Shown piece by piece: positions 3,850 to 35,638 of a DNA stretch of 64,000 nucleotides. Source of the DNA: Octopus bimaculoides (taxonomy: Eukaryota). The translations under genes and the position numbers were made by a program. How positions within the stretch are numbered: the stretch's first letter is position 1; each line of letters begins with the position of its first letter. Under the pieces are notes generated by a model that was not told the DNA's origin, ran no database searches, and saw nothing but the letters and a program-made list of their open reading frames with translations. The DNA lies in the NCBI RefSeq assembly GCF_001194135.2, contig NC_068990.1, forward strand, positions 30,559,668-30,623,667. Reading direction: 5' to 3'.

Positions 3850-4073
3850 ATCATATTGAGTTTGTCGATGTTCAACAAATATCCAGTGAGTTGGATACAT
3901 CAGATAATGGTATGACCAGTGAACTACCCAGCCAACTAGCAGTACAGTTCCAGGCACATGGACACAATGTCCAGTTGAAATTGGTGAGAAAGCAGGACAT
4001 CACTTTGGACATTCCATTCTGTATATTTGAAAACAACGAAACAGTTTGCAATATGGACAACAATATTGAACAG
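3850..4073 (+). CDS. Metalloprotease exon A (N-terminal prodomain): (D)HIEFVDVQQ...ELPSQLAVQFQAHGHNVQLKLVRKQDITLDIPFCIF...NNIEQ
   Basis: cccacag acceptor, CAG|gtaaca donor, 224 nt open frame. LP..L.V.F.AHG.NV.L.L resembles the ADAM/ADAMTS prodomain strand. The phase-0 end matches the next exon. Confidence 0.8.
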
Positions 4074-4530
4074 GTAACAATGATATATTGTTTTGTGAAT
4101 GTTGCCCATCTGTTGATTATCCCCTCGGCATTCAGATTCTTCTGTTTAATGTTTGTTTCATTGCTTTGAGATTTCAGTGATGTGATTGTTTATTTTTAGA
4201 ACAACATTGTAGGATAGGTGTGAAGGGCTGGATTTGGCCAGTGCAAACAGAAAAACAAGAAGAATCTTTAGGCCCTAATATAGCTGGTTTAAAAGCTAAA
4301 GGGTTTTATACTTACAGACTTGTACAATATACCATTACAACTACACAACATGTGTAATACTACTCAAACACACCAATGCTACTGTGCAACACACTAAGAT
4401 ACATGCACAACACACCCACAAACACCACTTTATAATGCATCAAATCTACAACAAACTACACCAACATTGTACAACACAGCAAAACAACCACACAGTGTAC
4501 CAAGCCTGTACCACAATGCACGAATATGAC

Positions 4531-6509
4531 CAGAGGAAGGATGTAGATACACATTACACACATCTTTTCCTTCTTTTTAGTTCAAGTCATGAGATTCATT
4601 CAAGCAAATATGTAGGACGGCCAGTCAGAGCCAATCCCAGCACAAGATTAACCAGCGTATGACGACAATCTGCTCTTTGATATCCTTGACGGAAGAGACT
4701 GTAGGGGGTTAATTTAATTTCCAGGGTCAATTGGTCTTTTCTTTGGTTGTTGTTGTTTTAAATTTGAAAAACTTCCTCTAGAATGTCATGTCTTGTATTT
4801 CTTTTTTTTTTTTTCTAATGTGAATTATTAAATAGAATATTTTGAAGTAGATTTGTTGATGATATTTATCTGTTGAGAAACATACCCAAGTTTGTGTGTC
4901 TGGTAGATACACATGAAACCCATTGAGCTGGATTCAGAGATATGAAATATTAAAAAAATATCTTATAGAGACTGGCTCTAATATATAAGATGTGTAATGA
5001 AAAGATTACAGGAACCAGCTTCAATCTATGAGATAACTGCTTAGAGAGACTGGTTTTAATAGATATAAAGTATTTAGTGAATATACATGGTTCTTCATAC
5101 ATGTGGGCTGGATCCAGATATGTATAAGGTATTTAGTAAACATACTGTATGAATGTGTTTCATGTGTGTGTGTGTGTGTAGGAAATATTTAATTGGGACT
5201 GGCCCCATATATGTATGTTTGTATTGTTACGACAACAAGGGTTCCAGATGATCCACTCAACAGAACAGCCTGCTCATGAAATTAACATGCAAGTGGCTGA
5301 GCACTCCACAGACACGTGTACCCTTAATGTAGTTCTTGGGGAGATTCAGTGTGACATAGAGTGTGACAAGGCTGGCCCTTTGAAATATAGGTACAACAGA
5401 GACAGGAAGAAAGAGTGAAAGGAAGTTGTGGTGAAAGAGTACAGCAGGGTTCACCACCACCCCCTGCTGGTGCCTCGTGGAGCTTTAGGTGTTTTTGCTC
5501 AATAAACACTCTAAACGCCCAGTCAGGGAATCAAAACCGCAATCCTATGACCTCGAGTGTGCTTCCCTAATTACTGGGCCATTGCACCTCCACGATGTCT
5601 GTACAGATAGATTATATATGCATATATACAATATTTAAAGAATTTTTGAAGGGACTAAGTTCTGATAGACAGAATTTAGGGAACAACCAACAAGTTCCAA
5701 CTTTCCAGTCAATGTACATTTGGAATAACTGTGCTCTTAGCTGCACGTCTCCCTAGTAACTAATGAATAAGGTAGTTACAATGTTTCTTCCAGGCACACC
5801 AACACCAACATGGCCTCATGAGATTTACTCGTGTGACATCTGGTTGATGAGAATGAAAGCTTGTCCATTTGTCCATTCTTTGAACTTGTCTTTAGTCTTC
5901 AGCTGACCAACAAAAGTTTCAACTCCCATCTCTATTATTCTACATGATGTCTTTCTTCTGCCAGTTTCATGTCAATGTATAAACGTAAGCAGTGTTTATT
6001 GTGAGGCTGTGTTGACATGCTGTGTGATAGTTTTGATGTTATACACTGATGCCAATACATTATGTGAGGTTTTGTATGCATCTTCCAGACATACAAACCA
6101 GCTGCTAGGCATGGCTCTGAACCTCATAAATATCAATTTTTTTCTCAACATACTTACTTAAAAAAATTCTATTTAATAAATCACATTGGAAAAAAAAAAA
6201 CAAGACATTAAATTCAGTTCTAGAGCAAGTCTTTGCAAACTTAAAACAACAGCAAAAACTAGACCCATAACCTTGGGACCCAAATTAATCCTTCATATCT
6301 ATTGACATCACAAAACCCAAAACTAATGATATTATGTACAGTCTCTTCCTTCAGTGATGTCAAAAACCAGATTGTCGTCATACACTGGTTAATCTTGTGC
6401 TGGGATTGGCTCTGATTGGCTGTCCTACATATTTGCTTGAATAAATCTCATGACTTGAACTCAAAACAAGGAAAGGATGTGAGTAATCTCTGCCTACATC
6501 CTTCCTCTG
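4531..6509. repeat. Long inverted repeat (arms about 4531-4922 and 6067-6509)
   Basis: The reverse complement of 6337-6509 aligns closely with 4531-4703; weaker, gapped similarity continues inward. Confidence 0.85.
5210..5593 (-). mobile_element. tRNA-derived SINE family C
   Basis: Sense head gtggaggtgcaatggcccagtaattaggg...ggttttgattccc has Pol III A-box and B-box-like motifs; (ACAT)n-like tail. Confidence 0.7.
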
Positions 6510-7288
6510 CTTATTATTATTATTTGTTCACTTACCTATTTTTTATTACTATTACTATTATTATTATTATTATTATTATTATTATTATTATTATTATTAT
6601 TATTATTATTATCATTATTATTGCTGCTGCTGCTGCTATTAAATGCTGCTTTTGTTAGCCAGGATGTTGTCTTGAGGTTTTGGTGACAAGTCTCCTCCAA
6701 ATCACAATAATCTTCCTTAAGATTCTTACAGTATACAGGTTAGCACTTTCCCACAGATCAACAATGCAAATCTCTCAGGTAATAGTTTGCTGTTGTGCCA
6801 AGTACAGCAATTACTACAGGAATAATTCTCACCTTTGTCTTCCACAATCTCTTTATCTCTCTCTAGCTAGAATCTGATATTTTTTTCATTTCTTTGGTAT
6901 CAACTCTATTATCATATGAAATTGCAAAGACTGTCATCTTACTATATTCTTTCTGTCCTCTATAACCAAATCTTCAATAGTATTATCAACTTTTATGGAG
7001 AAATCCTCCATTATTATTATTATTATTATTAAAGTGGCAAGCTGGCAGAACCATTTGCCTACCAGACAAAATGCTAAGCAACATTTCACCTACCCTTACG
7101 TTCTGAGTTCAAATTCTGCCAAGGTCACCTTTGCCTTTCATCTTTTTAGGGTCAATAGAATAAGAACCAGTCAAGCACTAGGAGTTGGTGTAATCAAGTA
7201 GCTCCTTTCACCAAATTCCAAGCCTTCAGTCGAAAGCATTATTATTACACAATTAGAAGAAGAGTGTGATACAATGTACAAAATACAG

Positions 7289-33213: not shown

Positions 33214-33386
33214 AGCTGCAGAATGATCCAGCAAGAGAACCAGCTCCAACTGATTCCTGCGAGGATGACGAATATGTTGAAATTAATAATCTAAGGTGCT
33301 CCAAGTTTGTTGTAATGTATGGCAAGAAGGCATGTGCCAGGGATGACATCAGGGACGCATGTTGTGCCAGTTGTCGAAGAGCGTAA
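33214..33386 (+). CDS. Exon Q, PLAC-like module 3: ELQNDPAREPAPTDSCEDDEYVEINNLRCSKFVVMYGKKACARDDIRDACCASCRRA* (or spliced at 33382)
   Basis: ttctgtcag acceptor (phase 1); six Cys ending CCASC. The TAA stop lies inside a GC|gtaagt donor consensus. Confidence 0.9.
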
Positions 33387-35583
33387 GTATATTGTCACTG
33401 ATACTTTATGGACGTTTTGGATACTTAACCCCAGCACTGACTGGCTGAGCATTCCTATGATCAAAAGCATTTCAATCATAACCATCCTGTCCTTTTTGTT
33501 TCAGACTACACTATCCAGAGCCCTTCCTTTTTTAATACTACAGCATATATAGTTTGAGGGAGGTATAACTGCTATTTCTTGCCAAATGAATAACCATGTA
33601 ATGGTTTTCTTCTTGGCTCAAGACATGTTGTTGTTGTCGTTTAGCCCCTGGTCAGTCTTTATCCAACAAATCTATGATCAAAAGCATTCCAGTCATTGCC
33701 CAGCTCTATATTTCAAGCATATCTAGGACTGCATTTTCTAAAAAGAATAGGATATGATTTGAGGGAGAGTTGGCTGCTATTTTTAACAGGCCAACTGACC
33801 AGAAAGAGTCTCTCTTCTACTTGATATTTTGTTTTTTGTTTAATTTAAAGAGTATTTAAGAAGTGGTTATTCAATTATTTGGTGTGTGCCATTTCTCACC
33901 TGACAAAGATCCTTATGATCCATGTGTTTATCCCAGAAACATTTAAAAAATGGCAGAATCTAATCCATCAGAATAGACACATTAAAGTTTCAACATTGAG
34001 CAGCTGGCTGGGTAGAAGTCTCCAAGACAATCCATCATTTTTCCAAGGGCACATATAGCCACCTTTTTCACTTCAATACTTCTACCACTCATGGACATGC
34101 TTATAAACCAAAAAATAGCACAGTATCCATGACTTTCAAAGACCTTTAAATTTTTTTTTTACACCCAGAATTGTTAAAGCATGGAATTAACTCCACACAT
34201 CAGTTGTTGACTGTCAGGACACTTCATCCTTCAAAAGCTCCATGCTTCCTTATAATCACCAACACTATTTCTGATGAGCTTTGGCAGCTTTTCCTCCTCT
34301 TTTTGACTCTTTTATGTAATATTTGCTTTTCTGTCTTTTCATGATTTATTTTGGGATATTCTACAAGCACTTTTAACTTTCATTGCTACCTCTCTTTACT
34401 TGGCTTATTGCCTCTTTCTCTTCCTTCTTTTTATTTTTTCCTGATGAGTTGTATTTCGTGTGACCACTGTATGTAACAATGCTCACTTCTATTAATTTCA
34501 ATGTATGAGTGTTTGAAGGAAAGGATTTCTTTAAAAAATAGGATTGAAAATAAAAGAAACTATATCTGCTTATGATTGATGCCTGAGTGTAACTGGAGTC
34601 CAAATACGGATAGAGTTTGCTATGAAGTCACAATAACTGATGACTTGGGACTGGACAAATGTGTCTGTTGATTTGCAGGATAGAATTCCTTCACTGTTCT
34701 GTTTCTTCAACTGAAATTGCTTAGATGCATCATGACACCTTTTCTGCCACTCAGATCAATCTAGGCAATAACTTTCCCCCAGGATGTCAAACTAAGCTGT
34801 AGGGATTTCAGTGATTGTTTCAACTTATTCTTATACCTAATAATAATCCTTTCTCCTCTAGGCACAAGGCCTGAAACTTTGGTGAAGGGAGTGGGGGCAA
34901 GTCAATTACATCGACACCAGTATGTAACTGGTACCTATTTCCTCAACCCCGAAATGATGAAAGGCAAAGTTGACCTCAGCAAAATTTGAACTCAGAAAGT
35001 AAGGACAGGCGAATAATAATAACAATAATAATAATAATAATAATAATAATAATCCTTTCTACTACAGGCAAAAGGCCTGAAATTTTGGGAGAGGGAGCTA
35101 GTTGATTAATTCGACCCCAGTACTGGTACTTAATTTATCGACCCTGAAAGTATGAAAGGAAAAAGTTGACCTTGTCAGAATTTGAACTCAGAATGTAAAG
35201 ATGGTCGAAATACTGCTAAGCATTCCACCCGGCATGCTAACGATTCTAGCAGCTCACCACCTTAATAATAATAATGATAATAATAATAATAATAATAATA
35301 ATATTATTATTATTATTATGCTTAGCAGGTAGTTTTGGCCCTTGCTATAACTGAACTACAAACAAAGCTCTGCAAGGGCAGATGTTTAGCTTTGGTTTCC
35401 CTAAAGAGGTTTCTTTCCTCTGGAAAGATTCTGCCATTCACAAGTAGTTCCTGTTGTCGCAGGAACTGAACCAGGAGCTGCAAGCTAACAAATTATTCAT
35501 CAATAGCACTGCTATTGATGAATAATCAATGAATTAAACCAATCACAGTATTCATCTTTTTGACAGTTTCCTCTATTTTCCAG

Positions 35584-35638
35584 AGATCTGCTCACTGGTG
35601 GCACCAACAGTAAAACAGCGAAAGGGGTGGTGGAGTAA
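35584..35638 (+). CDS. Probable terminal coding exon R: (A)DLLTGGTNSKTAKGVVE*
   Basis: tttcctctattttccag acceptor, phase 2 matching the donor at 33382; AATAAA follows at 35735. Confidence 0.55.

Follow-up and report, generated by a model that had tools for sequence, protein, structure and literature searches.

A predicted M12B metalloprotease of Octopus bimaculoides with an ADAMTS-type architecture, three tandem six-cysteine modules and no thrombospondin repeats

Introduction

ADAMTS-type proteases without thrombospondin repeats (TSRs) have been published in Caenorhabditis elegans, as MIG-17 (PMC4856095), and in Drosophila, as Sona (PMC4989167). MIG-17 consists of a signal peptide, a prodomain, a metalloprotease domain, a disintegrin-like domain and a PLAC domain (SS-Pro-MP-DI-PLAC; PMC4856095), and both Sona (CG9850) and the BmADAMTS-like protein of Bombyx have been described as most similar to MIG-17 (PMC4989167). 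Here, a gene of comparable architecture is described from a 64,000-nucleotide stretch of the genome of Octopus bimaculoides (RefSeq assembly GCF_001194135.2, contig NC_068990.1, positions 30,559,668 to 30,623,667 of the forward strand). This whole stretch is referred to as the window, and positions are counted from its first letter. An original prediction, made from the letters of the window alone, had proposed a MIG-17-like metalloprotease gene of 16-18 small, in-phase exons between positions 3850 and 35638.

The evidence set out below identifies positions 3850-35638 (+ strand), with a probability of roughly 0.85, as exons 2-18 of the orthologue of LOC115215596 of Octopus sinensis. The product would be a secreted, N-glycosylated zinc metalloprotease zymogen of the adamalysin (M12B) clan, with an ADAMTS-type architecture that lacks TSRs.

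Gene structure and coding sequence

The gene model was rebuilt independently from the DNA, with acceptor and donor sites set by hand around each candidate open segment. It comprises 17 exons of 35-224 nt on the + strand, corresponding to exons 2-18 of the gene. Exon 2 starts at position 3850 and the stop codon ends at 35638, the two limits given in the original prediction. AG and GT borders are present at every exon and the phase is kept at every junction, giving a single frame of 648 codons followed by a stop. The exon number of the original prediction and its domain order (prodomain, M12B catalytic domain, disintegrin-like domain and three modules) were both borne out. The exons are as follows.

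3850-4073 (+): exon 2, 224 nt; prodomain, N-terminal part, including the NET sequon; acceptor cccacag/AT, donor CAG/gtaaca
12492-12584 (+): exon 3, 93 nt; prodomain, AYDIYQDPEKMAAVTVELIARNKTQTPVLKL
14321-14444 (+): exon 4, 124 nt; last part of the prodomain, including the conserved basic site HYVKRR/S
16754-16847 (+): exon 5, 94 nt; beta-strand 1 of the catalytic domain, YGVELLVVVGHSIYK
18180-18258 (+): exon 6, 79 nt; catalytic helix A, FLQQSNNNFTESIKRIRYYFSHVVNS
21540-21617 (+): exon 7, 78 nt; catalytic domain
22406-22557 (+): exon 8, 152 nt; catalytic domain with the sequons NAS, NNT and NGT
23998-24032 (+): exon 9, 35-nt micro-exon, YDAFHPRKRIL; 100% identical in O. sinensis
25671-25776 (+): exon 10, 106 nt; zinc histidines 1 and 2 and the catalytic Glu (HELAH)
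25985-26161 (+): exon 11, 177 nt; third zinc histidine (NLGVVDHD), Met-turn (HHIMSPS) and the NTT sequon
26694-26832 (+): exon 12, 139 nt; closes the catalytic domain and opens the ADAMTS-type disintegrin-like domain
27100-27219 (+): exon 13, 120 nt; central part of the disintegrin-like domain
29554-29605 (+): exon 14, 52 nt; last part of the disintegrin-like domain, GCYFGNCLANISQQLVA
31587-31697 (+): exon 15, 111 nt, phase 1-1; six-cysteine module 1, DDCPYPDLPYLVNCKLASPLMCNNTEFYRRCCTSCNK
31868-32005 (+): exon 16, 138 nt, phase 1-1; six-cysteine module 2
33214-33382 (+): exon 17, 169 nt; six-cysteine module 3
35584-35638 (+): exon 18, 55 nt; 17-residue tail, DLLTGGTNSKTAKGVVE, with the stop codon at 35636-35638

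The product of O. sinensis LOC115215596 (P0001, an 'uncharacterized protein' of 674 aa) is 96% identical to the model over all 648 residues encoded in the window. The corresponding O. sinensis locus (L001) is chromosome-level, free of gaps and contains 18 exons. Its exons 2-18 are identical to those of the window in length, phase and splice dinucleotides, with exon 2 located at 26873-27096 of L001, and when joined at the inferred boundaries they translate exactly to residues 27-674 of P0001. Between the two species 27 of 649 residues differ, and the synonymous (dS) and non-synonymous (dN) divergences of 0.144 and 0.018 give a dN/dS ratio of 0.12, indicating that the gene is under purifying selection. 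Judged from this ratio and from 96% identity to an independently predicted protein, the gene model is far beyond chance. A further relative, 52% identical and cephalopod-like, is found on a 2257-nt contig of a sequencing-run assembly (L002), which appears transcript-like because it holds an uninterrupted open reading frame (ORF) of 657 codons (P0002). This contig crosses 14 of the junctions, including that between the disintegrin-like domain and module 1, with no alignment gap at the junction itself.

A search of a protein collection with a 181-aa concatenation of the obvious exons found no product of the window, and the full-length model was needed. The lack of an annotated product in that first search, together with an out-of-phase exon-like sequence at 20367-20419 (+), might suggest a decaying pseudogene or a catalytically dead protease-like protein. 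Either is very improbable, given that the 648 codons contain neither stops nor frameshifts, that dN/dS is 0.12 against O. sinensis, and that the gene retains an intact zinc motif, HExxHxxGxxHD, and an intact Met-turn, both of which are the same in all the orthologues aligned. The exon-like sequence itself (VNFENEEFSKRISLLINL / NFENEEFSKRISLLINL), which has a strong acceptor and resembles catalytic helix A, was rejected as an exon since it is out of phase with exon 5. Its likeness to the true exon 6 is weak and AT-rich, and in O. sinensis the segment is 78% conserved with indels, the level of an intron, and is not part of P0001; it is probably a chance resemblance or a long-decayed exon copy.

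Two junctions of the model (16847-21540 and 22557-25671) required an extra exon in between, exons 6 and 9, respectively. The micro-exon 9 received a splice score of 10.3, as compared to 6.6 for the runner-up, among all phase-compatible AG...GT segments between 22557 and 25671. An alternative, weak donor of exon 5 (CATA/GTATCT) was dropped after exon 6 had been found. Searches of the whole window with the model (tblastn) detected no paralogous or tandem copies. Eleven N-x-S/T sequons are encoded (NET, NKT, NFT, NAS, NNT, NGT, NTT, NNS/NST, NIS, NNT and NCS), in exact agreement with the list in the original prediction.

The tail encoded by exon 18 is common to O. sinensis only, being missing from P0002 and without a match in the bivalve orthologues, a distribution that suggests an octopus-specific extension of recent origin. 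An in-frame TAA overlaps the exon 17 donor, GC/GTAAGT (33381-33388, +), such that retention of the last intron would end the protein with ...CCASCRRA. This is approximately where the orthologues from other genera stop.

Prodomain, catalytic domain and disintegrin-like domain

In Pfam searches of the spliced product, the catalytic domain is matched by Reprolysin (44.7 bits, cut-off 20.8), Reprolysin_5 (34.9 bits, cut-off 27) and Reprolysin_3 (28.3 bits, cut-off 22.4), with three Reprolysin-like models besides Reprolysin scoring above or near threshold. The ADAMTS_CR_2 model is matched over its full length (61.8 bits, profile positions 1-69 of 69). Exons 10 and 11 share the zinc site HELAHNLGVVDHD (HExxHxxGxxHD), after which comes the Met-turn HHIMSPS. 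In an alignment of 11 orthologues, the H, E, H, G, H, D, M and P of the zinc site and Met-turn are invariant, as are all eight cysteines of the disintegrin-like domain. The prodomain ends in H-Y-V-K-R-R/S, with H-x-I-K-K-R as the bivalve counterpart; the R of the site is invariant in the same 11 sequences, and 10 of them retain the basic cleavage site and almost every module cysteine. The encoded protein contains 32 cysteines, two in the prodomain, four in the catalytic domain, eight in the disintegrin-like domain and 18 in the modules, an even number as would be expected for a fully disulfide-bonded extracellular protein.

Among solved structures in the PDB, the best matches by sequence are ADAMTS-5, -13, -1 and -4, with alignments spanning the catalytic and disintegrin-like domains, and catalytic domains of snake venoms were matched alongside them. 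A Foldseek search with the AlphaFold2 model of P0001 retrieved zymogen ADAM17 (prodomain and protease) and the catalytic and Cys-rich domains of ADAMTS1 and ADAMTS4. Residues 29-168 of this model are rich in beta-strands. The prodomain is assigned on the basis of its position, the Foldseek match to zymogen ADAM17 and the conserved basic site.

Assembly gaps and the absence of thrombospondin repeats

The region of the gene is interrupted by three runs of N, all of which are located in introns.

14828-15086: gap 1, intron between exons 4 and 5; phase 1 on either side
18265-18614: gap 2, intron between exons 6 and 7; begins 6 nt past the GTAAGT donor of exon 6
29008-29442: gap 3, intron between exons 13 and 14, inside the disintegrin-like domain

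The flanks of gap 1 are collinear with 43640-44399 and 45275-45836 of the gap-free O. sinensis locus. At gap 2 the left flank ends at 48785 and the right flank lies on 49420-49591 of L001, and the exon 6/7 junction is crossed without an alignment gap by both P0001 and P0002. Only GTAAGT (18259-18264) is read at the 3' border of exon 6 before the Ns, and this border is confirmed in the O. sinensis locus. The flanks of gap 3 are placed on 62448-63217 and 63687-63889 of L001, and the match to ADAMTS_CR_2 runs unbroken over the junction. No residues are lost at the gapped introns, since the phases agree over all three gaps, the flanks are collinear with L001, and the O. sinensis exons are the same and translate exactly to P0001.

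The absence of TSRs from the predicted protein was likewise upheld. None of the six frames of the window contains a thrombospondin type 1 (TSP1) motif (WxxW or CSxxCG), nor does the + strand of the orthologous L001, and Pfam gave no TSP1 match in the spliced product or between 27 and 36.5 kb. The intron at 29606-31586, where the TSR would be expected, is free of gaps, fully read and without a TSP1 motif. Similarly, neither ADAMTS_CR_3 nor ADAM_spacer1 is matched in the spliced product (Pfam, E up to 10) or in the precomputed Pfam lists of the orthologues. In the transcript-like P0002, the disintegrin-like domain joins directly to module 1.

The gene would be that of a canonical ADAMTS if TSRs were hidden in the three gaps, a TSP1 exon in which the original prediction had named as a result that would overturn it, or past the annotated end. 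Together the gaps conceal approximately 1 kb of unread sequence, and a relative in the brachiopod Lingula (P0093) has two TSP_1 repeats ahead of its C-terminal module. The probability of such hidden repeats is close to negligible. The introns that contain gaps 1, 2 and 3 fall at the prodomain/catalytic boundary, in the catalytic domain and in the disintegrin-like domain, respectively, rather than at the TSR position, which is fully read; the gap-free O. sinensis locus comprises the same 17 exons; P0002 passes straight into module 1; and the frame is closed by the stop codon at 35636-35638.

The C-terminal six-cysteine modules

Exons 15, 16 and 17 each encode one six-cysteine module of approximately 40 residues, and the three stand in tandem where the TSR, Cys-rich and spacer regions would otherwise be found. 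The modules follow the pattern C-x(1,3)-D ... C ... C ... CC-x-S-C, their six cysteines ending in CC-x-x-C. When 27 modules taken from 12 proteins are aligned, C, D, C, C, CC, S and C do not vary. The original prediction had described these modules as PLAC-like. The cysteine signature C-x-D...C...C...CC-x-S-C fits this description, while the Pfam PLAC model stays below threshold in every module tested. In Pfam searches, PLAC scored 10-12.7 bits in the spliced product, and modules 2 and 3 of the octopus protein gave no PLAC match. Seven of the 27 aligned modules matched PLAC at E < 10 (best E 0.0061), making it the family matched most often, and no match at E <= 0.01 was obtained in the relatives with 12-13 modules. 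The loop between the first and second cysteines of PLAC spans 4-5 residues, as compared to 11-13 in the modules described here. 'PLAC-like' is thus a reasonable description of the pattern rather than a demonstrated membership.

An ShK identity, which had been put forward for checking, was rejected on the cysteine pattern. The ShKT domain ends in C-x3-C-x2-C rather than in CC-x2-C, and no Pfam ShK match was found at E <= 10. A profile of the modules found nothing among the PDB sequences. Since Pfam gave no match above threshold, it may tentatively be asked whether the modules are not PLAC proper but a distinct cysteine module without a family model of its own, replacing the TSRs and spacer in a large, expanded lophotrochozoan clade of ADAMTS type; this is considered possible, albeit with the odds against it. 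Were it the case, the ADAMTS superfamily would have arrived at substrate or matrix targeting by a second, parallel route.

Assignment to the M12B and ADAMTS families

Membership of M12B follows from the zinc motif, the Met-turn and the family profiles scoring above cut-off. As regards ADAMTS in the strict sense, the disintegrin-like domain directly follows the catalytic domain, and the TSP1 repeat, Cys-rich domain and spacer are lacking. Of the MIG-17 type, the signal peptide (in the orthologue P0001 only), prodomain, metalloprotease and disintegrin-like domain with no TSR are found, and in the position of the single C-terminal PLAC domain of MIG-17 stand three modules that are PLAC-like by cysteine pattern only. 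Classification as a TSR-less, MIG-17-type relative of ADAMTS is supported. The Argopecten orthologue is named 'metalloprotease mig-17-like' by NCBI, as is a relative in Pecten. This name and the published architecture of MIG-17 (PMC4856095) support MIG-17 as the closest characterised kind. The genome is that of a cephalopod, as the original prediction had entertained.

Several points weigh against the overall reading of the gene. No trace of exon 1, which would encode the signal peptide, was detected in positions 1-3849 by tblastn. Exon 2 begins in phase 1 and its first codon (D) takes one base from exon 1, which is placed outside the window because the O. sinensis exon 1 (MASIRKQFLLVFLTVLFPGNTQSSTS) lies 16.8 kb upstream of exon 2 and only 3.85 kb are available here; the signal peptide (MASIRKQFLLVFLTVLFPGNTQS / MASIRKQFLLVFLTVLFPG) is thus seen in the orthologue only. 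In addition, Pep_M12B_propep gives no Pfam match to the prodomain of the spliced product, the AlphaFold2 model of P0001 is of moderate quality (mean predicted local distance difference test, pLDDT, of 62.7), and module 1 scores 12.4-12.7 bits with PLAC (PF08686) against a gathering cut-off of 26.4, leaving the modules below threshold. Finally, the function proposed for the modules below is drawn from analogy.

Distribution among molluscs and other lophotrochozoans

Bivalve orthologues with 33-40% identity and 84-96% coverage are present in Potamilus, Argopecten, Sinanodonta, Solemya, Mactra, Dreissena and Mercenaria. In nearly all of these, the tail consists of a module of the module-1 type (CPYPD[LI]P...) followed by two modules of a second type, the exceptions being the Dreissena model with two intact modules and one Potamilus model with four. 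When a profile built from 11 orthologues was run against 1.84 billion representatives, the threshold of E <= 1e-3 was passed by 2035 proteins and that of E <= 1e-30 by 372 representative clusters. The best 150 of these 372 are nearly all without TSP1 motifs and contain 0-13 modules each. Thirty of the best 150 were looked up, and all 22 of the clusters with a named member proved lophotrochozoan, comprising bivalves, gastropods (Haliotis, Lottia, Batillaria and Bulinus), the chiton Liolophura, the brachiopod Lingula and the annelid Paralvinella. These proteins are named without consistency, from 'ADAMTS 6-like', 'kaouthiagin-like' and 'mig-17-like' to 'mucin-5AC' and 'uncharacterized'. Another profile search for homologues returned four proteins and added nothing.

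This distribution across the mollusc relatives indicates that the three-module tail is ancient in molluscs and that the module number varies among paralogues, as would be expected if each copy is a phase 1-1 exon. The original prediction had regarded the PLAC-triplicated architecture as specific to one lineage, a view that did not survive. The same three-module tail occurs in one-to-one orthologues, namely the cephalopod-like transcript and those of six or more bivalve genera, and relatives with 0-13 modules are found in gastropods, a chiton, a brachiopod and an annelid. Conservation of the architecture across molluscs removes the novelty and leaves the gene in place, as the original prediction had itself anticipated for such an outcome.

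Two proteins of Lingula differ in domain content. In P0093 of Lingula anatina (XP_013406579.1), the disintegrin-like domain is followed by the two TSP_1 repeats and then by one C-terminal module, and this protein may represent an intermediate between the canonical ADAMTS and the TSR-less clade. In P0044 (XP_013409946.1), the protease core is fused to CAP, SEA and EGF domains.

Proposed mechanism and role

The predicted protein would enter the secretory pathway by means of the signal peptide of exon 1, as seen in the orthologue. The beta-rich prodomain may hold the enzyme latent until its removal at the conserved basic site, with cleavage either by a furin-type convertase or autocatalytically, as has been reported for MIG-17. 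By analogy with ADAMTS1, ADAMTS4 and ADAMTS5, the disintegrin-like domain would pack onto the catalytic domain and support its adamalysin-type zinc centre. The three cysteine modules could serve as an ancillary region for binding matrix or substrate and for positioning the enzyme, a task akin to that of the TSRs and spacer in the canonical ADAMTS or the PLAC domain in MIG-17. A role in the remodelling of the extracellular matrix or basement membrane is likely and represents the best inference, because MIG-17 and Sona act on basement membranes or extracellular signalling.

Reprolysin (M12B) genes with expression in the posterior salivary gland have been reported in octopods (PMC7656900), and the protein is itself a predicted secreted, glycosylated protease, so that it might instead have been recruited in cephalopods as a salivary-gland (venom) protease, a role the original prediction had also entertained. 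This is unlikely, as the published work (PMC7656900) does not identify the gene of the window and one-to-one orthologues of the same architecture occur in non-venomous bivalves, which argues that the architecture predates any venom use. Furthermore, the strong purifying selection (dN/dS 0.12) is unlike that of fast-evolving toxin paralogues, and no tandem paralogues are present in the window. Matrix remodelling remains the preferred role.

Other features of the window

The window has a G+C content of 36%, strong CpG depletion, five N gaps, and many simple repeats and interspersed elements. Repeated 13-mers cover approximately 25% of its length. Hardly any genes appear in stop-to-stop ORF lists because the window is full of repeats and interspersed elements; open segments of the + strand nonetheless hold unmistakable protease and cysteine-rich peptides. 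A dispersed repeat with the translation FNVCFPCWHGLDGLT...LQLDALPNANHSESV, which appears to be a SINE-like (short interspersed nuclear element) sequence, occurs in many introns and is also frequent in the O. sinensis locus. Examples of this repeat and the remaining features are as follows.

29900-30110, 30210-30380, 32535-32813 (-), 35844-36254 and 49330-49700: copies of the dispersed repeat
3509-3730 (+): fragment of a LINE (long interspersed nuclear element) endonuclease directly upstream of exon 2 (Exo_endo_phos_2, 29.1 bits); an intronic retroelement remnant outside the gene product
10296-10625 (-): 110-aa open segment, VAVVPIIVGVLGTVSKNLEKYMEQIGAAIRVEHLQKTALLGTARILRKVLE, in the intron between exons 2 and 3, without a significant Pfam match; presumably akin to the conserved C-terminal tail of invertebrate retroelement ORFs
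61763-62080 (-): open segment with a fragment of a protein kinase domain (Pfam Pkinase 29.4 bits, PK_Tyr_Ser-Thr 24.3 bits), which resembles an exon of a TGF-beta/BMP type I receptor and would belong to a neighbouring gene on the opposite strand

Comparison with known systems

On the sequence evidence, the gene is an ordinary, uncharacterised one, already predicted in the sister octopus and conserved across molluscs. Reading of the raw sequence recovered the correct 17-exon model, including the 35-nt micro-exon, and this model is apparently missing from the gene set of the assembly, as the first protein search found no product of the window. With this locus, the TSR-less, MIG-17-type branch of the ADAMTS gains an octopus representative. 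The comparisons also highlight a large lophotrochozoan expansion in which tandem six-cysteine modules stand where the vertebrate enzymes have TSRs. To specialists in matrix proteases and cephalopod saliva, this is of modest value; it brings no surprise and opens no long-standing question.

The nearest counterpart, O. sinensis LOC115215596, is alike in its domains, three modules and exon structure and differs in 27 amino acids and in belonging to another species. The paralogues of other lophotrochozoans (Solemya P0047, Haliotis P0049, Liolophura P0064, Lingula P0044 and Paralvinella P0067) share the same catalytic and ADAMTS_CR_2 core, which in most is followed by repeats of the C...C...C...CC-x-x-C module, and almost all are without TSP1 motifs. 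They differ in the number of modules (0-13) and some in their extra domains, and in the search with the orthologue profile they scored 200-570 bits, as compared to 888-1075 for the orthologue representatives. The canonical ADAMTS-1, -4, -5 and -13 are the best structural matches by both sequence and fold and share the eight-cysteine ADAMTS_CR_2 domain. The octopus protein, in contrast, is without the central TSP1, the ADAMTS Cys-rich domain 3 and the spacer, has four catalytic cysteines and is only about 20% identical to them. Sona and BmADAMTS-like enter the comparison through their published description as most similar to MIG-17. C. elegans MIG-17 has the same domain order, no TSR and a small six-cysteine C-terminal region, and is secreted and glycosylated; it carries one PLAC domain, whereas the octopus protein has three tandem modules under the Pfam PLAC threshold, and the two are likened by architecture rather than by tree.

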